Positions 13,906 through 62,750 of a stretch of DNA of 64,000 nucleotides are shown in pieces; positions within the stretch are counted from its first letter, which is position 1; every line of letters begins with the position of its first letter. The DNA lies in contig OZ176050.1 of NCBI GenBank assembly GCA_964247055.1, positions 10,788,001 through 10,852,000 of the forward strand, read 5' to 3'. A program made the translations under genes and the position numbers. The notes under the pieces were generated by a model. That model was given only the letters and a program-made list of their open reading frames with translations, was not told the origin of the DNA and made no database searches. The DNA is from Paragordius varius. Its lineage: Eukaryota; Animalia; Nematomorpha.

Positions 13906-14636
13906 TATATTTCAAAAATTATAAATCATTTTTTTAAAAAACTTTTACACTTTCAAAACAATTCCTTTTCCAAAAAAAAATTATTAAATCAAGTTAGAAT
14001 TGTTAATTTTGATAACATTGATATATTTTATGATCATCTAAAAATTTAATGAACATTCTTCAAAATAACTGTAGTGAGAAGGTACATTTTTAATTTATTT
14101 TTTATAACTGGTGGACACCCAACATAAAGATATATTTTATACAATTTTTAATTTATATTTTCTTTTTCAAATAAATACTAAGTTGTAGTATATGCAAAGA
14201 ATAGGTAAATTCTGTAATAAATAACAACAAATTTAATAAATAAAATAAATATAAGAATTAATAATAATAAAAACTTGACCGAGTTTAAAAGGTTTAATTC
14301 TATTTATAAATTAATCCACCTGTATAATAGGAGAAGAGAGGTGTTTTGCATGGAAAATACTTGGCTCTATGTTATCAGAGGTATTTCAAGCACATTTTAT
14401 GTTTGTATTAAAAGTTTATATCTAGATTTTTTCTTTTATTAGTTGGTAAATTTTTTTAATGATCTTACAATTTTATTTTGCTTAGTTTTATATTAATTTA
14501 TGTTTGTATTGATTATGAAAAATTAATATACTATTACATTTTTAATAATTATGGTAAATAAATGTATTATTACTATTAAGAAAAAAATATATTTTATATT
14601 CGATAACCACAGTGTTGGATTATTATTATTTTTATT

Positions 14637-17276
14637 ATGAGAAAAAGTCGTAAAGAGAGATGGAAAAAAGCCATACAACTCAAAATCCAAAATCAAATGT
14701 CAAAATTTGGTATCTATGATTCCCCTAGCCTTTATCGAATATATAGTCTTTGTTATTACTTAACCCCGTCTTGTGCAACATGCCTGAAATGTACACTTTT
14801 TGGCATATTCACATTGTTTTGTACAATGGGAGTTTTTAAATTCTTTGTTGGACATCATGGAGGTTCCCATAATAATGATTTTACCGATTGGTGGTGGACG
14901 TTTCAAGATAAAAAACCAGTAGACCTAATTGATCCATCATATCAGACATTTCATGGGGGTAGGTATGCCGACATACATGGGGCACGAAATCAAACGCTTG
15001 TAATGGTACAAGATATGGATTCCACAAATTATATGGATTACAATTTTAACATTCGTGAAATTTTGCAAGATGATGATGTAGGTCTAACCCTGCCCCCAAA
15101 CATGGCAACTCAAAACCCAGAATCCGATGCCTATTATAAAATCCTGGGAACTTTTTCAAGGGAGGGTGGCCCTCAGCACTTTATAGCAGGGGAACACGAG
15201 GATTATACATATCAAAATTATTTGACCCTTGACGTCAAAAATGTCTATGATGTTTCTGGTAATATTGTTACACCAATTCGTTTTTAATTAGTAGGAGTAT
15301 GTACCTTCTAAAAAATAGGGTTTTTTTATTTTTTACATCAAATTTAAGAGAGACTCTTTGATCATTTTGTTTTTTTACCGTAATATGTTGAAATTAAGGA
15401 AATACTAGTTTCATGATTTTTTGCTATTATGTAAATAAATTATTTTAAAAAATCTAACATGGTAGGAATATGATTTATATTTTTGAAGTAAATTTGTCCA
15501 AAGGAATTGATATGGTAATATTTCAACTTGCTATATTCTAAATTTTGACAGTGTTTAATTGAACACGGTCGTTTGATATTTTTTCATATATTTATTATTC
15601 TGTGGAGAGTTGCCACAAACACCATAATTTTTACAATATTTTTTAGTATGAAGCTATTTTTGCTTTTTATTAGAACTGGGTACAAAAGTAATACCACTTA
15701 CTAATGATCACAAATATCATTTGTTGGATGCAGTGAATGAGTCAATTTATTTTCTACAACATCAATTCTATCCACACATCCATTTCACGAATGAAAATTA
15801 CAAACTCACCAATGTTTATTGGTTAAATGTTTTGGGCTGGGGCACACAATATATCTGCGATTTTGAATTTCTAAACGTACCCAAAGACAAATTACCCCAA
15901 GATAAAAATCCGTCAACCAAAGATGATAATGACTCATTACTTATAAAACGGGTAGTGTATGCGAAACTGTTTAGCCCCTACCCAGAAGTGATTGCCATGT
16001 ACGATTTGAAAGAAAGGGAAGATTCGATGTACATTATATATCCTATTACAGATACCGAGGTTATATTACAACTCCTGTATGATATCGGTAATCAAGGTTT
16101 ATCGCTCTCAGACCCTCATTACATTTTGTACAGGATTGAAAAGTATGCCTGTATTTGTATGAATTAAAAATACTAAAAGATATATATAATATATAGTCCG
16201 TTTAATTGGAATATTTAACCAAAAAGAATTATTAAATTTAAGACAAATCGACTAAGCCTCTTTTTCCGTGAAAAAAACCTATACTGGGTACAATATTTCG
16301 GAAACCTTGAACATAATTTAAGCCCCCTAGAACTGAAACCTGTGTCCTGAAATTGGTTTAGGAACCGGTTATGAGGAATTGGAATCATCCTGGCTTTGGC
16401 TCCACTTTCTCAGGATCGCCCGTGTTCCCTTTTAAGAACTATATTGGTTTCATTTTCAAATTTCTTTTCCTCGAAACACTACCCTGGTTTTTCATAACTA
16501 TAAATGGTTCCTTTATACATTTTAAAACGAAATTATATACGTTGTTCAAAATGCTAAAAAACAGCAAACATTATTTTTTTATTTATAAAAAAATATATTT
16601 TATGTAAAATTTGATAAATATCAACATTTGAGTCTACCCTGGTCATAATATTAATGAATTTTTCGTAAATTATGGAGAATGAATTTATTTTATATAGGTC
16701 TTCCATAGTTTTGACCCATTATATTTAATTGTTAACAATGCTAAATTGTATACTGTGGTATATGAAATGATATTTTTAATTGGGCACTAATAACCGATAT
16801 GTGTGTGCATTAAAGGGATTAAAATTATAATAAAAGGTGCTTGTCTTCATATCATTGGCAAAAAATTATTTGAAGATAAAAATAAAAAAAATGGAAAACA
16901 AATTAGGAACCGGCAGTTAAAATTATTGGACGGTTATGTTTTTATTTTTCAGAAAACCCACCTAGAATCTGATTCCAAAATTTGAAGAATTAACTTAGTT
17001 AGACTTTGAGAATATAATTATGAGACATCTAATACACAACTACCTTGGGGTATGTTGTAAGTGAATTATGTTTCAGAATTAAATAAAAAATGATCTCATT
17101 CACCTGTATCATAATGGTTTTTAGCAGCTGAAGACTGAGTTATAAGTGTCCAAATAAGACGAATTAGTACTTCCATTATTTGTTCAATGTACTAAATACC
17201 ATTTCTATAGTGGAGAAGATTAAAAAGTGATATTAAATTATTTTTATTTGACAAACACTTTGATCGTCAATTGGAC

Positions 17277-17324
<48 letters not shown>

Positions 17325-19685
17325 GACCACATTACGATAATTTTTTATACAACTAGTCACTATTTTTAATAATCTTTATGGTGTACACCTGATGTTAATA
17401 AAAATATTTTTGTTAATTTCAATAAAGGCTTATCAAAAGTTGTAAATGTAACCATTGATTTATATTTTTACAAAAACGATACACAAACCATAAAAGAGCT
17501 AATGAATAGTGAGTGATCTATCTTCATTATAATCCATAAAAATAATTATCTACATAAAAATTATTTTTATCAATAAATATATAAAAAAATATAAATTAAA
17601 TTTATATCATATAACTGTTTTTTACAATAACAACACCCTTAGAACAATTCGTTTGGTAGTGGATACGTGTGACCCCAAACTGAATTTTATGTTCACACTA
17701 ACAACCAAATATCCGTTGGGGAACAATGGAACGCGATTTTTCGACCAGTTGACAGATTCGGTTCGCCTTCTCGTCAATTCCCTCGACAAAGATTGCCCTG
17801 GCACAGAAATTCAAATGGCGGCAGAGGATTCGGCCGGGGCAAGTCGTATAAAAGCTCTGCATGCAGCAATCTCTGCCTTAGATGATGACTCACTTATAAT
17901 GATTAGTGATTTGGATCTTCGATTTAACCTAAATTTTTTAGATCGGTGTCGTCACAACACAATCTATGGTAAAAGTGTTTATTTACCTATACCATTTCTC
18001 AAAGAGCTATCTGCAAGGGATGCCAATCAAGAGAAACGCAAAACGCTAAGTCTTTACAATGATATGGAAACCCTGAGTAGCCCAGGTAAATGAACGTTTT
18101 ACAAAAATGTATAATTTTATAAGGTACGTTGGCCGATTCACATCCTTTTTAGCTATCTATACAGTAGCGAAGTTGGGCAAAAAACAACTAATGGTTGAAT
18201 TTAAACAATTTTTTCCTATAATCTTACAACATCAAATTTGTTTTTTTAGTTATAGACAAAATTTGTTTATCATACGCTACTCTATCACAAGCTGTCCAAA
18301 TGCGAATTGGCCAACATAAATGTGGATCTGAATTTATAATTTAGTCATAGCATTATCTAAAGTAATGAATGATCTTTTATTTGGTAGATAATTGGTTGGC
18401 TGACAATTATCATACTGTGTGCATGTATAAAGACGACTACAACCATGTAAATGGCTACAATATGACAAAAATGTTGGCAGGGAACGAGGAATTGGATCTC
18501 GTTAATAAATACATAACCAGTGATCTAAAAGTTTATTTTCCTTTCACTAATATCTTACAATAGTATGAAATTTAAAGGTCGTTGTGCTTAATCATTGCAG
18601 GTTATATAAAAATTCCGATATATAACAATCTAAAAAACCGTTAACTTCGCGGTAAAGAAAAAGATTGAACCAATTTAAATTTTATTAATATTAAAAATAT
18701 TTCAATTTATTTTTGAAATAAAAAATGCCGACACACATTATATAAGATTTGATTGATCATTTAAGCGCAAAAAGCCGCGAATGTTCGATAAATAATATCA
18801 CCATTATTAAAAAAGGCATTAAAGTCACTTTAAACTTGGCGCTTTCAAGTGCGCAATAAAACTATAAAGCATATTACCGCAAGTACAGATCTTTTATAAA
18901 TTTATAAACATAATTTTACATGATTAAATATACCGCATCAGTTTAATCACAATTAATTATAATTTCATTAAAGAATAGCCTTTTATATTTTTAACGAAAT
19001 AATGGGAAAAAACTTTTACTTTAAATTCAGTGGTGATAGATTATTACTAATTGAAAGGTAGAAAAAAATTTCCTGTAAGTGCATATAATATAAATTAACT
19101 TATAAAATGTGGTTTAATTTTGATATAAAGAAATTGTGATTAGTCAAATATACATAAAAAAATTAAAAACGCCTCTCTTTCTATTGTAATTTTTTTAGAG
19201 GTAATTTATTAGCCTTATGTGCACCAAATCTTTCTGGTGATTGTGTTGTTTCGATTTATATAATGAATCGTAGATATAGCCATCTCCAATGATTAAATAT
19301 ATTTATTTATTACTTTTCAGTGTGATGTTATTAGATTTTAAAATACTATATTTGAGACAAATGTTTCATTCTTTAAATTACAAAAAATATATATCAATGC
19401 AATTACATGCATCATTGAAATTATGAAATGCTGTGATTTTATTAAAAAAATACATAAATATTTTAATTCAATATTGTTTCCATACAGATTATCAGAGCTC
19501 CAGATTTGGACTTGCATTATGTGAAAAATACTTTACCAACACCGTGTATGTCAGAACTAACAAAACAGAAACCATTTCGAATCCTGAAAAAATGTCTAAT
19601 GCACGCTTTCGCAAAAGCGTTTAGAAATGATCGGAAGAAAACACTCAGGCTTTTTGCTCAATTATACCAATTATACAAATTATAA
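14637..19685 (+). CDS. Chondroitin GalNAc-transferase / CHSY-family (CHGN, GT7-fold) type II membrane protein, about 646 aa
   Basis: Exons 14637-15258, 15674-16142, 17643-18085, 18256-18321, 18388-18530 and 19488-19685 join in phase (1941 nt). N-terminal TM segment. SRIKALHAAISALDDDSLIMISDLDLRFNLNFLDRCRHNTIYGKSVYLPIPF, W..DNYHTVCMYKDDY..VNGYN and DLKIIRAPD...CMSEL...KKC align to the CSGALNACT/CHSY catalytic domain. The exon path at 18086-18387 is the simplest in-phase option, not the only possible one. Confidence 0.8.
17282..17320. repeat. (TA)n microsatellite, longest of many
   Basis: Perfect TA run. Similar runs occur near 11544, 13477, 43106, 44427, 46198, 46260, 52952, 56399 and 58477. 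Confidence 0.95.
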
Positions 19686-23000: not shown

Positions 23001-24543
23001 TGTGTTTTCAAAAAACCCATTTTTTACACGGGGTGGGCCCGAACTGAGGACCTAATAAAAAAAGGGCGAAGCTATTGTATAATGACCATATTTTTTTGCC
23101 ATTTGAATTTGAATGGGTCTACCGGTTTTCCGGAAACAGATAACAAAGCCAGCATTTTCTATTTTTAAAAATATATTGATTATAGTATAAAGAGTATATG
23201 TATCTACATACATTCCAATTCGGGTCAATCATGCTTTTTATTTGCTATATTGCAATCCCTAATCAAAATATGTATCATGTAAACAAAAATTAAAATACTT
23301 AAATGAGTAATTTTTTGATAAGAATGATTCAAGGGTCATGAGACAAGCGTCATAAATGGTTAGGCAGAAATTTTTTTTAAAACTTATGCAAGAAAAAAAT
23401 GTATGAATTATAAATATATATCTAATTTAACCGCTTTACACAATTTTTTGAGGCAATATTTTACTGTTAAACGCTATTCATCCTTATTAAACAATAAAGG
23501 ATTTTAGGCTTCCAATGATTTCTATGTGCTTAATCGATATTATTTTAGAGGAAAGATTGATAACAATAAACATAAAAAATATAGTTAGTTTTGCTCATTT
23601 TTATGTTTGAAATCTAATTATTAATCTCCATATATAATTCGAATGCAGTCCGTTGAATTTTTGAGTCAAAAATGCGGCCTACGAGTCATTTGTGTTGGCT
23701 GATTTAACCATTAAGATAAACTAAATCTATTATATTTTTACTTTTAAATATTTTCCATATATTTTTCATTTTGCACTTGGACTAAAAATTTGGTACAAAT
23801 ACAAATGTTGAACAAAAAAATAATTCAAAAAATATATAGAGACGTAAAATTTTACCAATCAATAAACTTTTGAGTTTAACACCTCTCTTGGGTGTATTTA
23901 AGCCATAAACTTTGGCTGCCTGTGTCGTAGTCCTGGGTTTTGAGAACAAAATTTTGGATAAACAGGCTTCAGGAGGATCTGCGTTTTCTGAAGGCGCTTG
24001 GGATGATGATGTATTGTCGTCAGAATCACTAACTACAAAAACTGGTTCCTTATTTGTTTTATTGCTTAATAATTGATTATTGTTTATGCTCTTTAAGTGA
24101 TATCCTACGCTAGGGGATTTCACGAATGCTGCTTCCTCATAGGTTTTAGATATATCAATATTATTAGATTCTAAAAATTATAAATTTAATTATCACCACT
24201 CTCTTCTAATGGAACAATATTATTTTTATCATCTTCCAAATATTTTACGTACTTAGAAAGGAGGACAGTTTTCCTAATAAAGTAAATATAATTAATACCA
24301 TGCCCGTTTAAAATTTGGTCCCAAAATTTTTTGTCGTAAATCATGACGCATTTTACAATGCGACAATATTCTCCAATGTATCTTCATATTCAGTAGCAAG
24401 CAATAAATTTGTTGAGAACCAATGTTTTGACGCAATTTAAAAATATCAAATAAAAGATGATTGCGGCAATATTTGGTGACCGATTCAAAGATAACTTTCT
24501 CTTCTTCCTCATCAAAAGTGAATAAATTCTTTTTCTTATCCAT
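20007..24543 (-). CDS. TTF1/DMTF1/Reb1-like Myb-domain protein, about 336 aa
   Basis: Exons 24543-24299, 24273-24197, 24170-23856, 20651-20513 and 20241-20007 join in phase (1011 nt). LNWDEIYRLF...RYFKIRYRFVPHYKHILFPEILRTL aligns by eye to the TTF1 C-terminus IDWEDLA...[25 protein letters not shown]. The N-terminal FTFDEEEEKVIFESV...IHW...W resembles a Myb repeat. The gene model is firmer than the family call. Confidence 0.6.
20873..23180 (+). mobile_element. Putative Helitron/Helentron-type non-autonomous element in intron 3 of the Myb gene
   Basis: Starts ACTAGTTGGCCCTGTAACGCTTCGC and ends ...aaacagataac...ttttaaaaatatattgat. These resemble the termini of DINE-1/Lep1-like elements, which often carry internal tandem arrays. 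Classification is inference. Confidence 0.45.
21240..22800 (+). repeat. Degenerate tandem array, ~160-bp monomer with an A/B dimer of ~315 bp
   Basis: The core tatggtggcgcag-like motif recurs at about 21541, 21714, 21873, 22022, 22176, 22338, 22501 and 22668 (spacing 149-173). Units alternate between a ggcgggtagctcc type and a tttcagggt...taacggctaatt type. Confidence 0.85.
23630..23700. mobile_element. hAT-MITE terminal fragment
   Basis: caaaaatgcggcctacgagtcatttgtgttggc matches the family terminus seen at 4346, 45537 and 53511. Confidence 0.5.
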
Positions 24544-24597: not shown

Positions 24598-27500
24598 ATG
24601 GCTTTCAATCGTTATATTCAAGACGTAAATCTTTTTAAAAAATTATAACATATAGGTTTATAATGCATATATATCCAATGATGGATCCAAGTTATCAGTA
24701 AATTATGTTATATAAAATAGTTTTTAATTTCAATCAATAATGCGGTGTTTAATTATTATAACATTACACCCAGTTTGTTAAATGAGGCCGAACAATTGTT
24801 ACCTGACCCATACAAAGAAATAATTCCCTTACATTTAAAGTATAAAAAAAGGGTAAAAATAATTTTTAGATGTGTTAAAAATTTATGGGAGCGAAATTAT
24901 ACTGATTCTTTTGATTACCAAACATCACTGATACAAGTTTTTACCAAGTATTTGCAATCTAAAAATGATGAGAATTGGATGTTACCCGTTATGAATCAAA
25001 TTTGTTTGGATTTACGGAAATTAGCTTGCACAGTAAAATTTATATTGCTATTTTTTCTTCCCTATCAAGTTATATCATTCACACATTATTTGTGATTTGA
25101 TCTTAATATAATTAAAAAATAATAAAACATAAGTCAAAATAGCCTTATATTTTTTCCGATTTGTGGCTCTATTACTTTATTTTCTAATATAAAGCTTATG
25201 GCGCAACAATTTAACATAATAAATTTATTGATATGAAAGCGTTAACTATTCTTTTTGGCATGATATTTATATTCATTTAACACCCCAATAACTTTTTGGG
25301 TAGGTTAATATCTCAGAGCGATGAAATTTGATTATCTTAAAGAGTATTTAAGGTATTAAGCCGATCTTAGCAAATTCACAAACAAACCTCGAAAACAGTC
25401 TCCAAACTTTTATAAATGTGTGCAAAAAATACAATCTTACATTAAACCTCAACAAAACTAAAATTTTACATATCAACTCCCCTCATTCCTATGACTCGCT
25501 TCGGATTAATGGCGAAACAATTCAAGTAGTCAACGAATACACATACCTTGGAAGCATAATCAACAACTTAAGCTCCAGTTCCCAAGAAATAAGAAGACGC
25601 ATAGCTATCGCCAAATGCGCTCTATCCTCACACTACAAGTTATGGAAATCTCATGACATAACCCTTAAAACAAAAATCCGACTAGTAAATGCATTAATCT
25701 TTCCTATCATGTTATACGGGTGTGAAAGCTGGACTATCAAAAGTGAAGACGAAAAAAGAATAAACGCGTTTGAAATGTTTTGCTGGAGAAAGATACTTGG
25801 TATAACATGGAAGGACAAAATAAAGAATATCGACATTGTAAATAAAATTAACGCACAAACAACGCTTCGGGGTAAAATAATAAAACAAAAATTCGGTTAC
25901 TTTGGACACATTATTCGGGGCAATTCTTTGGAAAAGGATATTATGTTAGGAAAAGTAAATGGTAAGAGAGGAAGAGGCCGCAGACGTATTCGCTGGGTAG
26001 ACGAAATCTTATCACTTTCCAAATTGTCACTGCAAAAACTATCTCAAAAAGCTCACGACAGAACCGAATGGAGGAAGTTTTCCTACAAAATCGCTAATGG
26101 TCGATAACCGACTACAAGCTCAACAACAACAACAAATGCTTCCTTTAGCCTTTTTAGCGCATTACAAAAATGTAAAATTGTGAAAAATTCTCAATTTTTT
26201 TGCCGCCATTTTTTTCCATATTTTTTTAAAATTGCTATTGTAACAGGTAAATAAATGTATATTACGGTTAGAAAATGTACATAATTAATTTTAAAAAGTT
26301 TTCACATTTTACTACAAAAACTTGATATATTTTAATTTTATATCAGCTGTTAGTTTCAACCGTGTTTAGAGGTGTCCCAATTTTGAACTCTAGAAGTCGC
26401 AAAATTGCAATAAGTTTTTTAATCTAATACATGAGAACAACTGATAATTAAATTTTTCCTAATTCAAAACTGTAGTTTATTTAGAATATTGAGCTCTAGG
26501 ATATAAAACTACTCAAAATGTAAACTAAAACAAAAAAGTGAAAAGGTAATGAAGTGTTAAATTATTCAAAATTTGCAATATTTTTCCACTTTTTTTGGGC
26601 AGTTTGTAATTTAATCAAAAATATATTATTTATGATTTTAGGTCGAAACATATTACATAAAAGAAGGTCATCCTAAGCACGGATTGTATTTGGAGAAGGC
26701 TTCAGATACGCTTTTGGGATGTTTTCGCATATGTGCTACAGATAAGTAAATTTCCTAAGATTAAATCTTTAAAAATTATTTAAACCTATATAACGTTGGC
26801 CTTTTATATATAAATGCGTATCTATTTTTAAATTAGTGAGTAAATTAACCATTTTTATACTTTTTATAAAACTACAGTTTCTCATCTCCACAAACGTCAA
26901 AAAAGATGGGAATGCTCTTTCTTGTCAATCAATTATTCAAGATCTATTTTAAGGTAAACCCTTTACATATGACCTAGTTTTTTCAAGAAATGTATATTAT
27001 ATTTGGCATTTTTTATATGATTAATTCAAAAATATTTTTTGAAGATAAATAGACTCCCTTTATGCAAACCCCTGATCCGTGCCATTGATAATACTAAAAA
27101 TTTGGAAAATTACCCAAATTCTCAAGTTGTCACTTATAAGTAAACGCGTATTTTTATATTTTGTATTTTCAAATTTAATTGCGCAATTTTATAATTTAAA
27201 AAGCATATATAAAGTATGCATTTTAATGGTTGCTTATATCTCTTACTATAGTTGGGTATTTGCAACCACAGGAGTAGTGTATGGATAAAACAAAAAAATG
27301 TTAAATAAATAATTTTTTACTTTCCTGTATTACTTTGTTTATTTTATTCATAATTTACTTATTGTTTTTCCATACACTAGTGTGTTGTAAATTTCCCATT
27401 TATAGTGTGAAATAACAACCATTAAAATGCCTACTGTATATACAGTATGAGTAAGTATATATTGCCAGAAAGCTATTAATTATTGCCAAATAGCTAATAA

Positions 27501-30500
27501 CTTTCTAGCAATGTATACTTACTCATACTGTATGTATATATGTATAAATCACACTTGTTTTATTCAAGATTTTTTGTTGGTCGGAAAGCATTTTATGATT
27601 TTGATTATGAACGAGGTATGTATTTTTTATTATTTTTGAATGTTAACAAAACCAAATATTCCTATTTTAACATTTTTATAAAAATAGCTAATGAATTATT
27701 ATCGTACGCTTTTGAACACTGTGACAAACGATCAAAACGAAATATTCGAATGATTCTCATTTACCTTATTCCTGTCAAAATATTATTGGTTTTCATTTTT
27801 ACTTTTTACATTTTGTAAAATATCATATTAATTTTACTAATTTTAGGGTTATTTCCCCAGTCATTACATATTAGAGAAATACGATCTTTTAGCCTTTGAA
27901 CCAATTATTGAAGCGGTTAAGTAAGTTTTATCCGTGTTTTTTCCATAATCTATAACATATATAAACATTTTAAATTATTTTATTATATTTTTAATAAAAT
28001 TAATAGTAATATTTTAATAATTTTTAACATTATGTTTTACTTAATGTATATAAATAGAGTTACGATATTTTGTCTTAATGGTTTGTTTTTCAAAATAAAT
28101 ATTTTTGAATAAAAAACTCTATACATAAGGCAAATAAATAAAAAAAATTATGATCGAATAATATCCAATTTGTTGTTAATTTAATGTATAACATAACATT
28201 AATTTAGATGTGGAAACTTGGGGCAATTGGAAATGACAAAAGAGGCTAACAAAAAGTTTTTTGTTAAATCTGGCATATATCTTTTCCTTGACAAACTTAA
28301 AATGGTCACTTTCCGTAACCTGTTCAAAAAAGTGTATGTCGCTTATTTATATATCAATCTAATGTCGCTAAACTTGATATTTATTGCCTTATGAATCTCT
28401 TTTACATCATAAATAATTAATAAAGACAAAATTTAAAGAGTTAAGGAAAAGACAAATATTTTTTTCAAAACACAATTATATTTAAAACGATGATTTTTTA
28501 ATGTAACCTATTGTGTTGGATTACGAAATAAGGAATAGGAATGCTAATTGGTAATGCAATTTTATAATTTACAATTTTGTACATTAAGTTATAATATATA
28601 AACTGATCAATGATATAATTATATGCATTTTATTATTATTGTAGCAAAGATCGTTGTCGATTTATTGCTTTTTCGAAGGTGGATTTTCTCTAGTTTATTC
28701 GATTGTAAGTGAGTGATGTTAGCTTTTGTAAAGAGAGATTGGTTTCTTTGGTTAGGTTTTCGATCCAGCGCATCTTGCAGCGTCCACGTTTCCTGGATCC
28801 TTCGACCTTGCCTGTCATTAGTTGGATTCCAAGTCATTAGCTCTGGTAATGTGACCAAAGTATGATAATTTCATTTTGAGGCACATGCCAATCAGGTGTA
28901 TCTCGGGATATATTTTTTCAAGGATTACAGTGTTTTTTATTTTATCTTTCCAAGTGATTTGAAGTGCCTTCCGCCAGCACCAGATTTCGAAGGCGTTAAT
29001 GTATTTTTCGTCTACCTTTTTTATTGTCCAGCTTTCTGATGCATATAGCATGCTAGGAAATATTAGTAGGGCTTTAACTAAACGGATTTTTGTTTTAAGT
29101 TTGATGTCGTGTGATGACCATAGTTTATTATATTTTATCATTTTTGTCTTTGCAATTCCTATTCTTCTTTTAATGTCTGGGGTGCTGTTGTTAGTTGTAT
29201 TTATAAGACTGCCTAGGTAAGTGTATTGGGACACTACTTCTATTTGTTGGTTGTGAAAAGATAAGTTGTTATAGTGGTTATGAGCGTTTATAGTCATGAT
29301 TTTAGTTTTTTTAAAGTTGATCGTCAATCCAAATTTTTGACATTCGTTTGAGAATTCAGTTAGGAGTTTTTTCAAGTTGTCCACTGAGTTTGACAGCAGT
29401 ATGGTGTCATCAGCATAATGAAGTGATGATATAATATTGCCGGCAATGCTTGTACCATTAGTTTTATCTATTTCCCTAATACGCTTTTTATGCAGACGTT
29501 AAAAAGAGTATGTGAGAGGACACAACCTTGTCTTAAACTATTGTTCATTTGTACCCAGTTACTTGTGCCATGTGGGGTTTTTATGTTTAGTGATGAATTG
29601 GAATAGAGGGATTTAATGATGTTTAAAATGTGCTCTGAAACTCCCATCTGAGATAGTGCCCTCCACAGCGTGTCGTGTTTCACGCTGTCGAAGGCTTTTG
29701 TAAAATCAATGAAGCAGATGTGGGTTTCTTTCTGAAATTCAATTTGTTTTTCGAATATCCAACATATATTGCTGATCATGTCCCTGCATCCGCGATTGGA
29801 TCTAAATCCCGCTTGGGTATTAGAAAGTTCGGCTTCAATTATGCCTTGGATACGCCTGTGAATTATTTTGAGGAAAACTTTTGATGTTTGATTGATTAGC
29901 GCTATAGTTCTATAGTTGTTAAATAATTTAGGATCGCCTTTTTTCAAGATGGGGATGAGTATTGATTTGCACCAGTCTTGGGGGAATGAGGCGTGAGCAA
30001 ATATCTTTTGGAATAAGTCAGTTAGGATATGAATTGGGATAAAACGAATGAGTTCGGTTGGGATATCGTTGTACCCCTCCGATTTGTTGTTTAGGGAATG
30101 ATTGAGCGCCAATTCAACTTCTTCTTTGATGATCTGCGGGTCATGTTGATAGATATTACTGTTTTTGTCGGCGTTTTATAGGCTGGTGCCGTATAGTTTT
30201 ATAATACATATTGTTCCCATTGTTCCACCAGTGTTTTTTGTCCGTGATGATATCTCCATCTTCCTTTTTCATTGGGCCTTTGTAGATTTTAGACCTACGT
30301 GGAGCAATGTGATCTACGTCAGCAAAGTAGTTGTTGTTATGTTTAGCAGCGTTTTCTAGTTTTAAGCACAGCTGATTGTAGTGATCGTTTTTGTCTTTCC
30401 GAGCGCTTTTTTGGAACTCTGCGTTAAGTGATTTGTATTCTGCCATATTATTCTTGCATTTAGCTTGGCGCCGTTTGTCCGCTAAATCTAAACTTTTTTG

Positions 30501-31407
30501 TGATAGCTTAATTTTGTTATGATGGGATTTTTGGATAGGGATGCATTCTCTGGCTGTAGTACTAGGGATATTTTGTATTGTATTTCAAAGATTTTCAGCG
30601 TCATCGTCTATTTCGAGTGTTTTAAATCTGTTTTCAAGTAACAAAGGAAACTCGGTTTACAAAATATATTAGTTTTACTTTTTCCGTTTTGTCCTTATTA
30701 ATAATTACCGCTAATATAACGATTCTTTAGATTTAACATACTAAAAATGCATCAAATTGATATCCATGCATTTTTGGTGGCCCTAAAATTTGCTGGATAC
30801 GAAGAGGAAGATTGTGATCTCGATGAGGTTGAATGCTTACTCGCTAATCTAATTTACGAGGTATGTTGTGAATACAGTCAAATAAAATTATACTGACAAA
30901 ACGTAAAACACTAAAAAACTATATTTTTATCGCGATTTTTTTTAAATTAAACTCATTCAGTGTTTTGGGGCGCAAAATGAAATATTTAATGTAAATTGGA
31001 AACATACTACTCAATCATACAATTCACAATTATAATAACCTGTCTTTTTTTCCTAGTTGGTAACAACTGAGATTTAATTTGGTTAAATTTTTTTAAAACC
31101 CTAAACAATTTTAAATCATTTTTTAAGGTAATATCATATTATATTTTTATAAATGAACAATTTCAAAATATTTTTGAATACCTTATTGTTTCAATAAAAT
31201 GAGTTTTGAACATTAAAATAAAGTCCAAACATATATTTATATTTTTTCTCGTTTTCACACAAGTTTAATGATCCACTTTAAAATTCCTATTGTCATTAAT
31301 GCGATTAATTGACTAAATAGGGGAAAATTAAAGGCTACATTTCTCATCAACATCGCAAATTAGTTGTGAGTAAACTCAACGCTTTCCCTTCCCTCACAAA
31401 TCAATGA
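24598..31407 (+). CDS. PCID2: PCI domain-containing protein 2 (TREX-2 / Thp1 family), 13 exons, 396 aa
   Basis: Exons 24598-24624, 24656-24697, 24721-24839, 24870-25032, 26642-26745, 26878-26953, 27045-27139, 27569-27615, 27688-27788, 27847-27920, 28208-28333, 30731-30860 and 31321-31407 total 1191 nt in phase. Motifs [64 protein letters not shown] and [11 protein letters not shown]. Confidence 0.96.
25360..26135 (+). mobile_element. 5'-truncated RTE-clade LINE in PCID2 intron 4
   Basis: ORF 25418-26107 has the post-RT RTE motifs [49 protein letters not shown] and [13 protein letters not shown]. Ends in a (CAA)5 tail. Confidence 0.93.
28628..30655 (-). mobile_element. 5'-truncated, frameshifted RTE-clade LINE in PCID2 intron 11
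   Basis: Reverse transcriptase motifs [42 protein letters not shown] and HYADD (after a 1-nt frameshift near 29475). C-terminal ESWTIK...WCWRK. (TAA)n tail at 28628-28640. Confidence 0.95.
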
Positions 31408-32977: not shown

Positions 32978-35900
32978 TTAATGACATATTATAAATATTT
33001 TTCTTACATATGGCGATGAAGCTTGTCGAGATTTCTCTTTCTCGATTATTTTGAGACTTTTTTCCGGCGAAAATTTAAGGACGACACTTAAAACTTTGGC
33101 CATAGTCTGTTAATAATTAAATTAATTTATTTACAGTGGACTTCCTTTAATGACCGCGCTTATAATGTTGGTTTCATGTTCTTTTAACACAAACTTACTA
33201 ATTTTGATTGTTATACCCTCATAAGAGCCAAAATTAAATTAACAACTTTTTCAAAATATCTGTAAAAAGTTGAATTCAATAAATATTATATTTTATAAAT
33301 TTTACTAAAAAAATATGCGGATAATGATCCATATATTTTACAAAATCGAGGTTATTATCGGGGGAAGGGAAGAATCCACACGGTATGTTATTAAAAATAA
33401 AAAAACGCGTGAAATATTTTTATTACCAATGGTTCTTGGCCCATAATATATTCGTAAACAATTTTTCGCAAATATTCCAATTCCGATGTCTCTGGAAATA
33501 ATGGAGGGATTTGATTAATACTACCGCTGTTACTTCCGTCAGATATCTTTCGACTGTACATGAGGAGTTGTCTGGGATCATATTTTTGATTATCTATTTA
33601 TATAATAAATAAAATAAGGTCCTTAAATGTTTCAACACAATCAAACATATATTTTCAAGAATCAAATAATTTTTCCAACAATCAAAATAAGTTGCCCAAT
33701 AACTTTTTTATGTTTGACAAAGATTACTTGTAGTAATCGAAATATTATAATAAATTTATATAATTTTTGCTGAATTATTCCATATATAATAACTTTTTTA
33801 TGTTTCCAACAATCAACACATTTTAAACACCAATAATTATCATATTAAAATCAAATTAAATAGAAGTCAATCAAACTAACCTTATATATTAAACTAAAAC
33901 AGATTTTTATCAGATGAAAATAAATTAACATTAAACTATAATATGGGCGAAAAAAATTCAAACTTACTATTATAAATGTTTTGTGAGTAAGAGTTGGGTG
34001 AATTAAGGGTTGAATTAGAATTCAATGAAATATTATCCGTATTATGCATATTATGTGAATCAAAAGAGAGGATATTTGGTGTCATTGCCAAATTTCTAAT
34101 TATTCCTGTGGTCGGGCTTGCCATGGAATCCTCGAGTGATGCCAAAGAATTAAGTTGTGATCGCAAAAATGGATGCTATTTTAACATAAAATATTATCAG
34201 TCTAAAAACAATTTTTTATTTGGATAAATAAAAATATGACCATTTTTGTTAGTTTATGTATGTGTCATTCATTCAGATAACAAATTTTTATTGTAAGATA
34301 TATATTTTATATATAGCCAATTCAATAAACCCAAATGTCAAAATGATAGGTCTGTGATTAATGTTATTTATATGTAAAAATTCAAGCTTTTTTTCGATGA
34401 CAATACACCTAAAAATTTATTTTTATATTACTTTAAAATAAATTTCTATAAACTAACAGAAATTTAATAAAGGAAAATATCATATTAAAATTTACTTGGT
34501 TATTAGTAATGGCACTATCTACCGGAGAAAGGTTGGCTGAATTATCCCAAGAAATTGTGGAATCTCTGTGTAAAAAAAACAAATTGAAAAAAAAAAATTA
34601 TATAAAACAAAATTTTGTTTTAAATTAATATATGCTATAAAAAGCTATTACATATTAGGCCCGGAATGATTGTTTAAAAGGTTTTCATTGATTTCTTCAT
34701 GTTCCACATAAGATTTTTGTGTTTGAGGAGACAACAATGCTTGATTTGTATTTATCTAAATTATTTTTATTAATTTGTACCAATTATGTAAAATGTGCAT
34801 AATTTAAGAAACATTTATGAAAAGTGAGAAAAATGTCTAATGGAAAAATAAATATTTCTGTCCTTAAAAAATTAATGAAAATCATCGCAAGCGGATAGTA
34901 TATATCCAAATTAATTATTTTTTCCATATCATTTCCCAAAATAGTGTTTAAAACTTAACAGAACTCTATAAAGATAGAAAATAATATTTAAATAATTGGT
35001 TATAACAGGCTGTAAGAGATAAAAACAATACTATCCAATAAAAACAAATTTATTACCATATAAATTAAATTTAAAAACAAAAAGTTATCGTGAATTGAAA
35101 AATTTGTGAATATAACAATAAGTTAAAATCCCAAAATAATAATAAAAGAATAACAAGTGTATCGATACTAAAACTAATAATAAAACTAAACATTATTTAT
35201 AAATATGGCTAAAATTTAATAAAAAACCATAGTAACAAAAAAATTAAATTAATTCCCTTCATAAAATTAAGAGTTTTTCTATGGATAAAAGTAATAAATT
35301 CAGTATAATTTAGATTAGAAAATTGAAACTTATTTAAAAAAAATAAAGCAATGTAAACCTGCTCATTTAGCAGAGCGTTTGGGGACGAGGGTTGTTCATG
35401 TAATATGGTAAGAGCTTGTTGGAGTAATTGATTGATATGATTTTTCCACATTTGATCCTATTTGAATTTAAATAATGCAAATGTTACCATATCTTATTAA
35501 ATTAAGTTATAAAGGCAAACACGTAAAATATAAGTGGAATTTGAGTAAAAAAGCAAACTTAAAACAGTAAAACATGGCCATTTTTTTATGGCGGTCATAC
35601 ACCCATATTGATATAGTTTATATGAGTAGTGGTGTTTATAAAAAAATATAAATAACCCCGAACCCTATATTTTATAATCCTTAATACTGTATCCATAGTA
35701 ACTATAAGTGAGAATAAAAATTTTAAAACATAGTTAACCATAGAAATGACAGTGTTGTTTTGCGTTTTTACAATGGTTTAAATTAAATGATTCATTTAAT
35801 GGATATATATATTGTGATCTTAGAACAATGTAATCATTATATCGATAATATTCGGAAATATGTGTTGTTTTATTTATGATTTAAATCCTTTATAATATTT

Positions 35901-38900
35901 GTCTTCTACTAAAATAAATATTCATTACTATTTCATATTGGATATAAGGACCAAAATCAGCCCAAAGTGTGTTTGGTTCTAAAAGTTTGTTGAATTCATT
36001 GATATCATTTTCACGCATCTCCATTAAACGATTAACAATGATTTGTAATAAGCTTAAAACATAAAAACGAGTAATGATTGTAAATTAATTTTAAACAAAT
36101 TATTGTATCTCATTTTCAAATATGTTATGCAATTGACTTACTTTATTACTCAAAATGTAAAACAAAATATTAGAAGGATTATGGATATCAAAAAACTAAT
36201 TTTGCAAATCAAGCGATTAAATGAACGAAAAAATTAAATTTAAATTAAACAAAAAATTATATAAATATAAACTTATTTATAATCATTCTGACACATTGAT
36301 CAAGGTAAAATTGTAATTTAGGCCCCAATGAAATCAACTGATCTCCTTTCAGGTTTAACAAGTTTTTAAGGTCGGCAATTTCCCTTTCTCTAGCCTAAAA
36401 GAAATAAAATACCATAATATTGGGCAAAATTACTGTTCATTTTATACACTTTGTTAGAGTTATTAAAAAAATATTTGAATTATAACATTTATATAAAAAT
36501 TAAAAAATTTGCGGATCATATATTTTATAAATTAGTCTTATAATGAGAAAAAATCTTGGGTAATATGTGCTTATATACCAAAAGGGTTATTCATAAAATT
36601 ATTGCTGTAATCTTAGAATTATTAAAATACTTCAAGTTTCGTGTCATACTCATCTATAGTACGTTTCATACATTCGTCCGATTGATGTAATATGGCATAA
36701 ATATCTTCTTGGTCATTAAAAGAGGGAGATTTTAGCTTTTGAACATTCGTATTAGTTATCAATTCTGATAATTGACATTGCTGAAAAGAAAAATATAACG
36801 ATTGGATAAGTTTTAAAATTAAAAAATAATTTTTAAATATTTTTTCTAGCATTTTTACCACAATTTATAATATAAAGTGTTATACAACTTCTTGATTCAT
36901 TTTAGTATTTGCATTGTTTAGATTTGATAAGGTTAGATGGGATTTGGAATTCTTGATAGATTCCAATTCTTTTGCATGATTTACTAATGTTTCCTGATAC
37001 AAATTCCGTAAATCTCCAATGTTTTGATTACATTTTTTGATTACCAGATTTTTTTCTAACATTGCATCATCCAAATCAGCTATTCTAAAGTAACAACCGT
37101 AAAAATATTTATTAAATAAAATACTTCAATGGTAATAGTATATAAAATAGAATGAGAAGTAATGTATATAATAATCCCAACCTTTTTTCAAAATCATCCT
37201 TTAATGTTTTCATATTGATTGCATGGTCTTGCATTAGGAGAGTTCGTTCCTTTTCTAACCCAATAACCTTTTCATCCAATTCCTCAGTTATGAGTTGATT
37301 TTCCTTAAAATCGTTCAACAGCGTTTGGTATAGGGCAGACATATCTTTATTCGCCTTAGTTAATTCATCAATTTGGTGCTGATATTTATCGCATGTCAAA
37401 GTATGATCACGCCTTACACTGTTTAAAACATTTTGTAATTCATTGTGATGAGTAGTTTGGTAAGCCCGTTGTATTTGTTCAAAAAGTTGGTTATATTCAT
37501 CACGTATTGTTTTAAGTCTAGTTTGAGCTAATGTTTGTAAACTTTGAAGGACAGATTTAACCGTCTTAATTTCTCCATCTAATGCAGCTAATGAAGTATT
37601 CATGAATTGATTTTTGGAATGTAAAGCTTTGTTCTTTGCAATAATTTGCGTGAAATTAGAGATAATTTTGGCTTCCACTCTTTCTATATGTGCTTCAAGC
37701 GTTAAAATACGCTTTTTAAGCTGTTTAACCGAAAAATTAGATGTGCTAGAATCGATTGAATTTTCATTTAAATAAGGTGAAAGAAGTTGAGCAATTTTAT
37801 CGTTTTCATTGTCTTCACCCACTAATGGCAGGTAAAAAGTAGCAAAACCGCCTAAAATATTCGGCAATAATTCAACTTTTACTAAATCTTTTATAGTTTC
37901 ATCTTTTTGCTTAAATAGGGTTATAACATTTTGTGTTTGCATAGACTCCAAAGTATTTTGATGTGTAGCATTCAAAGTCCTCATAGTTTCTAGAGTTTTG
38001 TCAAGTTCAGATTGTAATTCTTTTATTTTTTGATCATCCCAAATTTTTTGTGCATTTAACTCATTTATTTCGGTTAAGATGGGAGTTATATCAACGAAAG
38101 GTATAGCGTCCAAAGCAACATCACATAATTCAGGTTGAGGTAATGATAGTGTTTGTGTCATAACATTAATAGTGTTAGCGAATGCATTTGTTTGATTGTC
38201 ACCTATAGAATATTGCATATAAAAAGTAGTAATAATTTAAAATTTATTAATCTGATAAAGATTTAGAGAAAATAGTAATCTAGATATATAGTATTAATAA
38301 ATTAAAAGGGTTAAAAAAATCTTGTTTTTATATTTGATAAATTATAGCAGGGACGCTTAAATTAAGCATTAATCAGTAATGTTTTTCGCAACATTAAAAA
38401 TGCAATGTCGTTTTTTTCGTCTCATACCAAAAAAACCAAAATTAAATAAACATAAAACCAATACCATAGCATAATAACAAATATTTGCAATCTTTGGAAA
38501 CTATTTTATCGTAAAAAATAATTCTTAATAAAAACTATATAAAAATCATATTACTGGATTCCTTATTATCTGTAGTTATAGCTTCTGTGTCGGAAGAATC
38601 GGTTATGTCCTCGTCCAACAAATCTTTTTCATTAACCTATAAAATAATATTTCTATTATATATTTCTGATTTAGTTTTTTTGAATTCGTTATCATAATGA
38701 TACGGGGTGAAATAATTCAACCCGAATATTTTAATTTTATAGTCTTAAACGGGACAAGAAAGGAACGAATTCTAACCTCTTGGATGTGAAAACCCTTTTT
38801 AAATAGTATATAAGCTTTTTATTTTTGTGCAAGTTTGTATTTAAGCTGGACGGAGAATACACTCTCCGAGTAGGGTTTATTTTTGGAGTAATACTGCATA

Positions 38901-41900
38901 ATTTTCAAAAGATTTAATTTCTTCATAACTAAATCGTTGCGTGAGTTTTATATTATCAAATAAAATAGAGTAAAATCGTATAATCAACATAAAAATTGAT
39001 ATTTAACAATAATATAGAATTATCAAAAATTACCATTGTATTTTTGTATTTTTTAAGTACACTTCGATTAAGGGCTAATTGACCCTAGAAAATAAATGAG
39101 AGAAATTTGTTTACGTGAGGTTATTTATCAAACATACGAATTTTTTATAATATAATAAAACATTGCATGGCTCTCCAATGAAATATTTTAGCATGAAATA
39201 ATATTAAATTATTTCGAAAGAATAATTTTTGTGAAACCTATTTTATAGAGAAAATAATTTAAATATATCTAGGTGCCATAAACTCCGAATACCATTTTTA
39301 AATATGTACTTTTTATTACCCAAACAAATTTGCATTATTTTTATTATTTTCTTATAAGTTGAACGATGTAAATTTAACATAAATATTATTTGGCGTTAAA
39401 AGTTTAAATATATATTTATAAAATAAATTTAATATGCAAAATTGATAAAACCTTATTAATGAATTGATTTTGCATGAATTGTAATCGTTCTCGCAATTGG
39501 CCACATTCATCTTCTAATTCTTTGATCCTTTCCCACGGGTCAGGTCCAAGCGGTATTTGTTTTACTAAAAAGTTAACAATTAATTAAATTTATTTACATA
39601 AAAATGATTTACATAACTGACCAATTATTTTTGCATAAAAAATGTAAGATGGATTAGTTATATATACATACAATCAATTCAAATTCACCCTTAAACAATT
39701 CAAATTCTCCCTAAAAATAAATTATGTGTTTTAGGGCTAATATAACTCATTTATATGGAATATATCTTTATGGTTTGATTTATTATTTTTTCAGTAGTAT
39801 ATAAAATTAAACAAAATTTCATTTTTTTTAAATATAAAAAAATATAGGTAATTTTTAATCTTAAAAAACAGATAATTTATTTTAGGGTAAATTTAAATTG
39901 TTCCAGGGTGTAAATGTTATGCTAATATCACATATTTACAGTCATGTATGTTTAGAATTGTCAGATATACGTTTTTACTTGATTTTATTTTGTTTTTAAT
40001 TGTTTACAATAAAAAAGCTATTATTATTTTAATGCTTAAAAATGCACTTGTTGAAAGTTGACATATCAAACATTAAAACAATTAAAAACAAATTATAATC
40101 ATTTAAAAACGAATTTCTGTCAATTCTACATATACATGACTGTAAATGATTTTAGAGTAAAAAATACGGCTTGAATACATTTTAATAATAAATAAGTAAC
40201 AAACTTGCAAAAGATTTTTGACAAAAATAAGTTTCCTTTAAACTAACTGCTGTAAAACATACTTGGCTCAAAATTTAACTTATTAGAGCGTAATCTATCA
40301 AGCGCTTCCATTAATTCAGATTCGGTTTTTGATTCCGCGTGATTTTCAACATTTTCATTGGTTGATTCATCGTTTATCTCATCTTTAGCTATTATAGGAG
40401 GTTCAATAGTAATGGGCGAAAGGGAAACGTCACTCCATTCATTCCAATTTTCACATGCAATATTTTGGTTTGATGTTTCGCTATCTTTGGTAAAATGATA
40501 TTATATCAATTAAGGTTAAAATGTATACACAGTATATTATTATATAAAATATAATTGGTAAAAGTTAAATGAAATAGATAAATACATTATATATAATTTT
40601 ATGATTTATACATTATATAATATAATAAATTTCTATAAAAATACTTATATTGTCAGTTTCTTTCGTTGTTTGATCTTTTGCATTTAGTGCTTTTTGCATA
40701 ATTTCAACCTAGATAAAATATAAAAAATTTGATCCAAAATAATTAATTAAATTAACATTGAAACCAAATTAAACAAAAAACAAATGTACATTATGATTTA
40801 ATTAAAAAATTATTAAACATACATAATATATTGATATTAAGTAGTTTGTCCTAAAAAGGGCAAACTAAATAGCTTCAGTTTATAATTAAAGTTGTGATTA
40901 TGGTTTCAGTTTTAACGGCCTTAATATATTTTTATACGATGTCAATGTAGCCACAAAAATATAATATATAAATATGTTGATTTTTTCTAAAAAACTCTGA
41001 TAAAAGACAACAGTATATGGAAAAATTGGGGCGCATTGGAAATAATCTCGTTTTCTAAGATTAGAATAATAGACTCTATGTTTGGCAATTATTTGCTAAA
41101 TTAGTATAAATTATCTAAAATAAATTAAAAAATTAACCATTGGATCCCTTTGGAACACCAGTTAAAATTTTAAAAACGATCCTGTTTTTTTAACATTTTT
41201 CACTTAAAAAATAGTCTCAAAACTCGGGTATAATCTTTATAAAAAAATGCCCCAAAATATTATGTTCCAGAATACAAATTGCGTATGGCATAAAACATTA
41301 TTAGTCCATGAAAGAATAAAAAAATGGTTTTTAAAAAAAAATAAGTCTAGTTGTATACACGCATATCCATAATCCCTTGTTTTTTTTTTCAAAGAAAAAC
41401 ATTTTTTATTCTTTTATGGACTATTATTATTTTATGCCATACGCTACTGTAATTTATGACATATTTTACATCTTGCTGTAGTTTATGGATTTGTGCATCT
41501 TTATCCTCCAACATGGAACGAAATGAAAATTCTAAATGTTCTTTGGCTTGTTGATTCAATTGAGATGCCTCCTGCATTTCTTGTATTCTGCGTAACGTTT
41601 TATCTTGAAATTGACTCAAGGTATTCTGAGAAATTTTAATATATAAAAATCATAATTATCAGTTTTTTAATATTAAAATAAGAATAAGAATTTGGTAATA
41701 AAATAAAAAACTAGATCATTTAAAAAAGATTTGATAAAAATAGGTGAAAAGGGAAATATTAAGAAAATATAAGGACAAACACCGCTCTAATCAAAAATTC
41801 AGTAATAAAGTTACAGAGAATTAATATTGCAGGATACTTTTAGATTAAATTAATATTAGTGTTTTGGTCATAATTTAATATATATAAACTGTAATCCAAA

Positions 41901-47802: not shown

Positions 47803-50008
<2,206 letters not shown>

Positions 50009-58471: not shown

Positions 58472-58508
<37 letters not shown>

Positions 58509-61080: not shown

Positions 61081-62750
61081 TCATTTCAATATGTAATCCT
61101 TGTTTATATGGACATCTTTTAGAGATTTTGTTCCATTCTTATCTACCAATTTCACCTTAAATGCCGGCAAGTTGACTAATAATCGTTTTTGAATCTAATT
61201 CGTTAACAATAAATATGTAATTTTTTCCAATAGAAGTATGGAATATATCAGATAAAACCAAATGTACAACCTCATCAATCGCTTTTATTAGTAATTCATA
61301 AGCCTCGGTTTCATTCATGTCTATACATTTATAGTAAAAAGAAGAAATGTAACAAAAATAAATATTTAATAGCTGGTTATATAGCATAATGTTTTATCCA
61401 TAAAATTAGAAAACCTTTTCTAATAAATTTTTAAAAAATGCGCATAAGGTAACAAATTATTTTACCGGGTTTGTGATATCGATCAAGGATAGAGTTTGCA
61501 AAAAATGCTCCATAACCCTGAGCTCCGAACGGAACCGTGAGTAAAGAAGCCAAATAATCCATAAAGTAAAGTGAACTCTCATTTGTTACAGTATTGTACC
61601 CAGCTATCATTGAGTTTACTTGGTAGGGATTCGACTTAAATAATATAAAATTTATAATTCTTAATTTTTACGTAAAACCCTTAAATTTCTTTTTTCCATC
61701 CTACATAAATTGAAAAAGTAAATGATAAGGAAGCTACATAATATTTTTTATAAAAACAATCTTAGCCAATTATAACCCCCGTTTAATTGTTTTATCCGCC
61801 AAAAAACTCCAATTTAGGTTATATTTTTTAGAAATTTACTATTATATAAATAACCATACAAAAAGTAAGGAATAATTTTATTTATAAAATTTATTTAAGA
61901 AAATTTCAAGATAAAATATTCGTTGGAGATAGAATTATTCAAAAATAAACACATCTAAGTAATATTGATACTTTTAAACCCTAAATTTCAGTTTTAAAAT
62001 CTATTAAACGGGACAAATCAATTTTAGTTCCGATTCGTTACATAAAAAGCGTTTAAAATTTCTTATTAAGCAAAAAGTGAAAATAAAGTAACTTGTTTAA
62101 AAGTGTATAAACCTTTAAAAAATTATACGCAATAATATGAAGTGGTCTTATTTTTAATCTATAAAGTTTCGGCAATCTTTAGCAAAATAACAGAGACATT
62201 GCTAGAGGTAAGAAAAAAATAAACTATATTGTACTAATGAATCGAACTTATTTATGTAAATGGTGCATTTATTATATAAAACTATTTTGACGAAGAAAAT
62301 TATTTGAATTTGAAATAGTTAAAATTAATGGTGTTTTTATGGTTATGTTAGGTTTGATCGGATAACCTTTAACTAAATATTTAAAAATGGTTTAAAAAAT
62401 AAATATAATAATTATAACTACCGAACGTAAGGCTTCAGCTAAAGTTTTACGCGCAAAATGTGCCACATGTGAAGGGTCAACATCATATCCTAAAATATTA
62501 GTTGAAGTTAACCATTTCTGAATTTATATAATTGCATGTTTTTAGAAATATATTCTGCGAATTCATGACTATCCCCCTTTTCGCCAACAACGCCTATCAT
62601 CACACTACTGTTGATATTATACATTTTTTGACTGTCTATACAATTATATAATATATTACCGTTTTTTATGACCAAAATGCTATGGGTTTCGGTAGCATCT
62701 GAGGCAAGGAGAACAAAGTCTTTGCAGCGAATACCGATTATACACTCCAT
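61081..62750 (-). CDS. PSMB2: Proteasome subunit beta type-2 (beta-4), 6 exons, 204 aa
   Basis: Exons 62750-62660, 62635-62513, 62489-62422, 61634-61466, 61320-61271 and 61194-61081 total 615 nt. [77 protein letters not shown] and QKRLLVNLPAFKVKLVDKNG. Confidence 0.97.

Follow-up and report, generated by a model that had tools for sequence, protein, structure and literature searches.

For a long time, introns of fewer than 30 nucleotides (nt) were considered impossible in animals. A survey of 51 animal genomes found introns below 30 bp only in myxobolid myxozoans and in Dicyema japonicum, with medians of 27 bp in Henneguya salminicola and 22 bp in Thelohanellus kitauei and Myxobolus rasmusseni, and described the GTA...AG signals of these tiny introns as reduced, with weak A residues preceding the AG, and the U2 small nuclear RNA (snRNA) as standard (PMC13644364, Mol Biol Evol, September 2026). 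The same study predicts that more lineages with introns below 30 nt will be found, and nematomorphs are not mentioned in its text (PMC13644364). Ciliate introns fall in a similar range, being ~25 nt long in Paramecium and 15-16 nt in Stentor (10.1101/2021.08.05.455221, PMC9505925). Here we describe very short GT-AG segments (micro-introns) in the PCID2, Rab1, and PSMB2 genes of a 64,000-nt stretch of DNA (the window, C1:10788001-10852000), which lies on the largest contig of a 110.6-Mb, 44-contig assembly with ~27% GC, as well as in other conserved genes of that assembly. Comparison with orthologues leads us to regard these segments as very probably genuine U2-type GT-AG micro-introns in nuclear genes of a nematomorph. 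Our full-text literature searches on nematomorph and hairworm introns, from which the 2023 genome paper of Cunha et al. was out of reach, returned no report of short introns in Nematomorpha; the abstract of that paper reportedly makes no mention of introns.

Micro-introns of PCID2, Rab1, and PSMB2

The open frame at 24721-25092 matched PCID2-type proteins exclusively when compared with 1.84 billion representative proteins, and, with a top match of 43% identity, that search returned no close relative. Seven of the matched PCID2 homologues were then aligned to the window (tblastn); in six, a gap of 10 residues coincided exactly with the 30-nt segment of the gene, and the same alignments placed later exons as far as position 31401. 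Removal of this segment and of the two upstream of it (31 and 23 nt; all three GT...AG, 83-87% A+T) renders the exons colinear with the homologues (Table 1). The full intron series of the gene runs 31, 23, 30, 1609, 132, 91, ~400, 72, 59, ~290, ~2390, and ~460 nt, and the introns of 1609 and ~2390 nt, the latter lying between exons at 28212-28343 and 30738-30857, both hold reverse-transcriptase fragments. The G+C content of the window stays between 22 and 32% throughout.

The exons of Rab1 and PSMB2 were searched singly against solved structures. Four Rab1 exons tile the human Rab1A chain 4fmc_B without a gap and with near-complete identity from residue 4 to residue 90, in the segments given in Table 1. 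The PSMB2 locus carries a Proteasome family match, and its first two exons correspond to residues 1-30 and 33-71 of PSMB2, with residues 31-32 explained by split codons, whereas exon 3 (22 residues) gave no significant match of its own in the PDB. The original prediction had assigned lengths of 31, 23, and 30 nt to the PCID2 introns, 24, 23, 24, and 28 nt to those of Rab1, and 24 and 23 nt to those of PSMB2, and had stated that tiny introns coexist with kb-sized, transposon-filled ones; the lengths proved exact, as did the positions given for PCID2, and the coexistence is evident in PCID2.

Table 1. Exons, introns, and repeats discussed in the text, with positions counted along the window
Feature	Position	Strand	Remarks
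PCID2 exon 1	24598..24624	+	9 codons, ATG start; colinear with residues 1-9 of homologue N-termini
PCID2 mini-intron 1	24625..24655	+	31 nt, GT-AG, 87% A+T; retention gives a frameshift; exons 1 and 2 abut in homologue alignments
PCID2 exon 2	24656..24697	+	14 codons; aligns with homologue residues 10-23
PCID2 mini-intron 2	24698..24720	+	23 nt, GT-AG, 87% A+T; retention gives a frameshift; exons 2 and 3 colinear with homologues
PCID2 exon 3	24721..24839	+	aligns from homologue residue 24 onward
PCID2 mini-intron 3	24840..24869	+	30 nt, GT-AG, in frame, stop-free; 10-residue gap in homologues
PCID2 exon 4	24870..25032	+	tblastn alignment; protein search matches PCID2-type proteins
PCID2 intron 4	25033..26641	+	1609 nt; reverse-transcriptase fragment at 25352-26104 (RVT_1 C-terminal match); exon 5 from 26642
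Non-LTR retrotransposon reverse-transcriptase pieces, frameshifted	28821..30584	-	RVT_1 E=1e-22 and 9e-10; inside the ~2390-nt PCID2 intron
Rab1 mini-intron 1	49962..49985	-	24 nt; retention gives an immediate stop
Rab1 mini-intron 2	49866..49888	-	23 nt; neighbouring exons are Rab1A residues 4-27 and 28-43
Rab1 mini-intron 3	49794..49817	-	24 nt, in-frame stop; neighbouring exons are Rab1A residues 28-43 and 44-59
Rab1 mini-intron 4	49718..49745	-	28 nt; neighbouring exons are Rab1A residues 44-59 and 60-90
Rab1 intron 5	49555..49621	-	67 nt; followed by a ~1.38-kb intron
Rab1 last exon	47806-48030	-	Ras family match
PSMB2 mini-intron 1	62636..62659	-	24 nt, in frame, stop-free; exons contiguous on PSMB2 once removed
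PSMB2 mini-intron 2	62490..62512	-	23 nt, CTAAT motif; retention gives an immediate stop; next exon keeps the frame open
PSMB2 intron 3	61635..62421	-	787 nt; read from sequence and open frames
PSMB2 later introns	61321-61465, 61195-61270	-	145 nt and 76 nt; sequence and open frames
Myb-like gene, candidate mini-intron	24274..24298	-	25 nt; bridges open frames of 90 and 28 codons; model-based
Myb-like gene, candidate mini-intron	24171..24196	-	26 nt; bridges open frames of 62 and 128 codons; model-based

Features and occurrence of the micro-intron class

The features of the class were pooled from 18 introns, with the first intron of UBE2D and the two Myb-like candidates standing outside the pool. 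Lengths range from 22 to 31 nt (median 24, mode 23-24) and show no obvious bias modulo 3 (5, 7, and 6 introns); among the five whose length is divisible by 3, two of those checked are stop-free. GT and AG ends are present in 18 of 18 and in the three introns outside the pool, and the pooled A+T content is 86%. Positions +3 and +4 are A or T, position -3 is T in 15 of the 18, the commonest 3' end is TTTAG, and the exon sequence at the junctions has no strong consensus. The absence of any obvious branch-point consensus, also claimed at the outset, stands in part: most of the 18 contain TNAY, its A lying 5-10 nt before the 3' end, which would be compatible with a branch site, but such a motif is often expected by chance and is not statistically meaningful because the sequence is 86% A+T. 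The U12-type signature, a 5' site RTATCCTT with a branch site TCCTTAAC, is not seen in the 18, all of which lack a U12-type 5' site.

Micro-introns are present on at least three chromosome-scale contigs (C1, C4, and C5). The BiP gene on C4, read directly from the sequence, has introns of 23 and 28 nt followed by one of 69 nt; the UBE2D orthologue (C1:7.335 Mb) is split by five, of 24, 24, 26, 25, and 25 nt, with exons corresponding to UbcH5b residues 41-65 and 66-100 at complete identity across one of them; and the UBE2N orthologue on C5 has introns of 22, 22, and 26 nt, then one of ~175 nt. UQ_con profile coordinates abut across gaps of ~25 nt. Once the segments are removed, PCID2, Rab1, PSMB2, BiP, and UBE2D run colinear with their orthologues without a gap, and so does UBE2N, for which the evidence is Pfam profile coordinates together with reading of the sequence. 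Chance cannot account for such exact, gap-free colinearity at so many separate GT-AG sites.

The total stands at 19 homology-verified mini-introns, 10 of them in BiP, UBE2D, and UBE2N, plus two that are based on gene models. By a rough count, in a sample that is small and biased towards conserved genes, ~21 of ~57 introns belong to the micro class, which is therefore not the majority here, and micro-introns share genes with introns of 59-2400 nt. This indicates that the genome has two classes of intron and that the tiny ones are not the norm. Several genes lack the micro class altogether, namely HSC70 (introns of 80 and 165 nt), an HSP70 paralogue on C7 (eleven introns of ~67-698 nt), and a CCT gene (seven introns of ~380-710 nt), and none was seen in the stretches read of the UBE2I-like and UBE2L3-like genes, which have long exons. 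Flags for stops inside the CCT matches, considered as possible mini-introns, were mostly match edges and left only in-frame candidates of 36 and 75 nt.

The micro-introns are the 5'-most of the modelled introns in Rab1, PCID2, PSMB2, BiP, and UBE2N, and all five introns of UBE2D are micro-introns; in Rab1, PCID2, PSMB2, and UBE2N the first k introns, and no later ones, belong to the class, an arrangement with a chance probability of about 1 in 130,000 by our own arithmetic, which assumes complete gene models. Such a 5' concentration in short housekeeping genes might mean that ancestral introns collapsed locally, depending on their position, to the physical floor of the spliceosome, and that the genome as a whole was not compacted.

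Elsewhere in the window, the introns of 25 and 26 nt originally proposed for a Myb-like gene are flanked on both sides by long open frames, but no homologue confirms them, and a word search with a Myb-like exon gave no match. The 23-nt intron attributed to GOLGA4 and those of 23 and 25 nt attributed to an orphan gene had no unambiguous location in the window. Homology-free detection was tried and set aside: both the counting of GT-AG segments of 15-70 nt that bridge open frames, compared with control dinucleotide pairs, and the use of bridges between neighbouring long open reading frames (ORFs) were dominated by chance at 27% GC, and a stricter scan recovered only the Myb-like candidates. The gene at 33394-42868 (-) encodes a long coiled-coil golgin, which we take to be GOLGA4-like from the appearance of its N-terminus and GRIP-type C-terminus, and includes a 374-codon exon (37115-38236) and a candidate 40-nt intron (37085-37124). 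A chondroitin N-acetylgalactosaminyltransferase-like gene at 14607-18090 (+), with a CHGN match at 17533-18090, contains a candidate 28-nt intron (15646-15673) joining open frames of 32 and 163 codons. A gene with multiple LIM domains, resembling four-and-a-half-LIM proteins, occupies 57294-60777 (+) and has introns of ~100-1700 nt, among which no mini-introns were seen. A G/C run at 8880-8935, which would encode poly-Pro or poly-Gly, stands amid sequence of 27% GC, and an exact look-up of one window ORF for RNA support returned no record.

Splicing machinery and the weighing of explanations

The genome carries genes for all the major spliceosomal snRNAs above the Rfam cut-offs (U6 at 114 bits, U2 at 178, U1 at 124, U5 at 91, and U4 at 107). 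The inspection of the snRNA set recommended with the original prediction thus finds U1, U2, U4, U5, and U6 present, with standard recognition motifs in the best copies of four of them: the U1 5' end ACUUACCUG, GUAGUA in U2, ACAGAGA and AGC in U6, and loop 1 of U5. With a standard snRNA set, the spliceosomal RNA core is therefore unremarkable, and whatever permits the splicing of 23-nt introns is not visible in the snRNAs. As to the minor spliceosome, a U6atac match of 66 bits lies at C2:4857045-4857187, while a search for U12 gave no match. Matches to U2 (46) and U1 (17) are clustered at C3:257000-530000, C6:565000-633000, and C6:3.72-3.73 Mb, where many copies are degenerate and below cut-off and a few are intact. 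A gene for an SR-type splicing factor, with an RNA-recognition motif and an Arg/Ser-rich tail, adjoins PSMB6 at L017:704-1237 (-).

The interpretation first put forward, namely that the segments are spliceosomal GT-AG mini-introns, is supported and appears to be the only reading that fits, given the exact boundaries, the narrow range of sizes, the high A+T content, the recovery of colinearity in seven conserved genes (three in the window and four elsewhere), and the presence of the major spliceosomal snRNA genes. Several points nevertheless count against it. Excision is deduced from protein conservation and not from RNA or cDNA; the TNAY branch motif is frequent by chance in such A+T-rich sequence; the CCT gene and the HSP70 paralogue are devoid of mini-introns, in a sample that is small and biased; and neither PCID2 intron 3 nor PSMB2 intron 1 shifts the frame or contains a stop, so that the reading frame cannot tell them from short insertions. 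For these two introns, therefore, it is the alignment and not the frame that demands removal.

The two segments in question (PCID2 24840-24869 and PSMB2 62636-62659) could instead be lineage-specific coding insertions of 10 and 8 residues with fortuitous GT and AG ends, as both can be read through without a stop and the frame does not force their removal. We consider this very unlikely: in length, boundaries, and A+T content (83-88%) they are the same as the frame-breaking introns of the same genes, in the six PCID2 homologues the edges of the gap coincide exactly with GT and AG, and the PSMB2 coordinates become contiguous only after removal.

Doubt may also be directed at the source of the DNA rather than at the segments, in that the window might be a contaminant from a dicyemid, a myxozoan, or another organism with already described tiny introns, and no window-encoded protein was matched to a named nematomorph. 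Such an origin is nonetheless highly improbable. The window lies on the largest contig of the assembly, and the same intron class and ~27% GC recur on contigs C1, C4, and C5. The 88% identity of HSP70 to ordinary animal sequences does not suit a fast-evolving myxozoan. PSMB6 (on C4), a single nuclear marker, is 76% identical to the protein of Gordionus sp. m RMFG-2023, with the next best match at no more than 57%; the gene is intronless here (L017:1444-2118), whereas its Gordionus counterpart (L029:10001-12019) is interrupted once, near residue 183, by an intron of ~1.27 kb, and no gene with a mini-intron was found at that Gordionus locus. The GC content of ~27% compares with 26.9% in the Gordionus genome (10.1101/2023.06.26.546503), whereas the 110.6-Mb assembly falls outside the 200-300 Mb range of the nematomorph genomes studied in a 2024 preprint (10.1101/2024.06.11.598342).

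The mitochondrial genome, contig C44 (15,693 bp), bears further on this question. Its genes contain TGA codons, its tRNA set is bilaterian, and its gene order includes the ecdysozoan blocks cox1-cox2-K-D-atp6-cox3-G-nad3-A-N-S1 and T, P (minus strand), nad6, cytb, S2. Within 15.7 kb there are 71 inverted-repeat pairs of at least 30 nt, many of the longest being 100% complementary, with arms of up to 208 nt and a palindrome of 416 bp (L015 5104-5519); inverted repeats also lie within the coding genes nad4, nad5, and cox3, and repeated peptide blocks occur in cox3 and nad4. Long perfect inverted repeats inside mitochondrial coding genes are a described feature of Nematomorpha (PMC6649704), and these hairworm-type coding palindromes argue against a contaminant. 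A 72-nt tandem array on the same contig (L015 6745-7383) gives rise to spurious ARAGORN calls of tRNA-Val and tRNA-Asp. An arthropod source was considered on the strength of the order cox1-cox2-K-D-atp6-cox3-G-nad3, and searches for families of cuticle proteins and odorant receptors, which carry little information here, gave no match; PSMB6 and the mitochondrial palindromes point instead to Nematomorpha, and none of the contigs had the look of human DNA. From these nuclear and mitochondrial sequences, the genome is judged to be that of a hairworm distinct from Gordionus.

If excision took place in DNA and not in RNA, the segments would be germline-limited sequences eliminated from the soma, like the internal eliminated sequences of ciliates, and the assembly would represent germline DNA. 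In length there is overlap with the shortest eliminated sequences of ciliates, and the present evidence is genomic sequence. We give this almost no credence, in view of the GT...AG rather than TA-type ends of all 18 pooled segments and the three others, the presence of all major spliceosomal snRNA genes, and the ordinary GT-AG introns of the same genes; we also know of no intragenic DNA elimination of such a kind in nematoid animals. That the loci are decaying pseudogenes or assembly artefacts with nothing to splice, as evidence that is genomic and not drawn from expression might allow, has a negligible chance given exons 90-100% identical to human Rab1A and UbcH5b and a uniformity of GT-AG form and size across unrelated housekeeping genes that is not expected of random indels.

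Taking the segments as spliceosomal micro-introns, we propose the following mechanism. The 5' site, reduced to GTWWWT, would pair weakly with U1 and U6, and the 3' end, usually TTTAG, may act as a short pyrimidine-tract-plus-AG signal of the kind read directly by U2AF in nematodes. A branch A in TNAY, 5-10 nt upstream of the AG, would be separated from the 5' site by only ~10-18 nt, which would place the intron near the smallest lariat that a spliceosome can form. The narrow size range might then represent a physical floor, to which ancestral introns would have collapsed by deletion.

About 30% of universal genes have reportedly been lost in hairworms, and if the micro-introns are what they appear to be, their genes would be broken up by BUSCO and standard gene finders, whose assumed minimum intron is longer, and part of that loss could be an annotation artefact. 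Pipelines with a minimum intron of ~30-40 nt will mis-model such genes, and hairworm gene counts and estimates of missing orthologues need to be rechecked. Because tiny and ordinary introns share transcripts and the snRNA set is standard, each gene would also serve as its own internal control for the splicing of 23-nt introns.

Comparison with known tiny-intron systems

Nematodes are the sister phylum of the nematomorphs, and their well-developed splicing genetics makes this relationship useful. Introns of Caenorhabditis elegans have a mode near 47 nt, a 3' site of UUUUCAG that is read by U2AF, and no branch consensus. The micro-introns resemble those of nematodes in their T-rich 3' end just before the AG, their weak branch signal, and a tendency to shortness, but the nematode minimum is about twice the length of the micro class, and T rather than C occupies position -3 in 15 of 18. 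Ciliates share with the present genome a narrow length range near the physical minimum, a high A+T content, GT-AG ends, and a standard snRNA set; they differ in being protists in which essentially every intron is tiny. Paramecium introns that are in frame and stop-free are depleted, whereas no such depletion is apparent in our small sample of 18.

Among animals, Dicyema japonicum is likewise bilaterian and parasitic, and its introns, ~20-30 nt long, occupy conserved positions and carry reduced splice-site motifs; yet nearly all dicyemid introns are tiny and the genome is reduced (PMC6736024, PMC6543705, PMC13644364). The genome studied here, unlike that of dicyemids, spans 110 Mb, is rich in repeats, and carries kb-sized transposon-bearing introns in the same genes. 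The list of comparable systems in the original prediction, which named ciliates and dicyemids among others, omitted the myxobolid Myxozoa, with their medians of 22-27 bp (PMC13644364). These are also parasites with A+T-rich genomes and a standard U2 snRNA, and their GT-AG introns of less than 30 nt in conserved genes have a similar 5' motif of approximately GTA and a weak A upstream of the AG. The differences are that myxobolids are cnidarians and the present host is an ecdysozoan, that the TTTAG 3' signal is kept here, and that the tiny class sets the genome-wide median in myxobolids, whereas it makes up about one third of our sample and many genes here have only introns of 300-700 nt.

It is tempting, if still somewhat doubtful, to see in Nematomorpha a third independent animal origin of introns below 30 nt, which would be the first in Ecdysozoa and the first as a discrete minority mode in a repeat-rich genome. 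The micro-introns work like those of the known tiny-intron systems, and what sets them apart is their minority, two-class distribution and the bulky, repeat-rich genome in which they reside.

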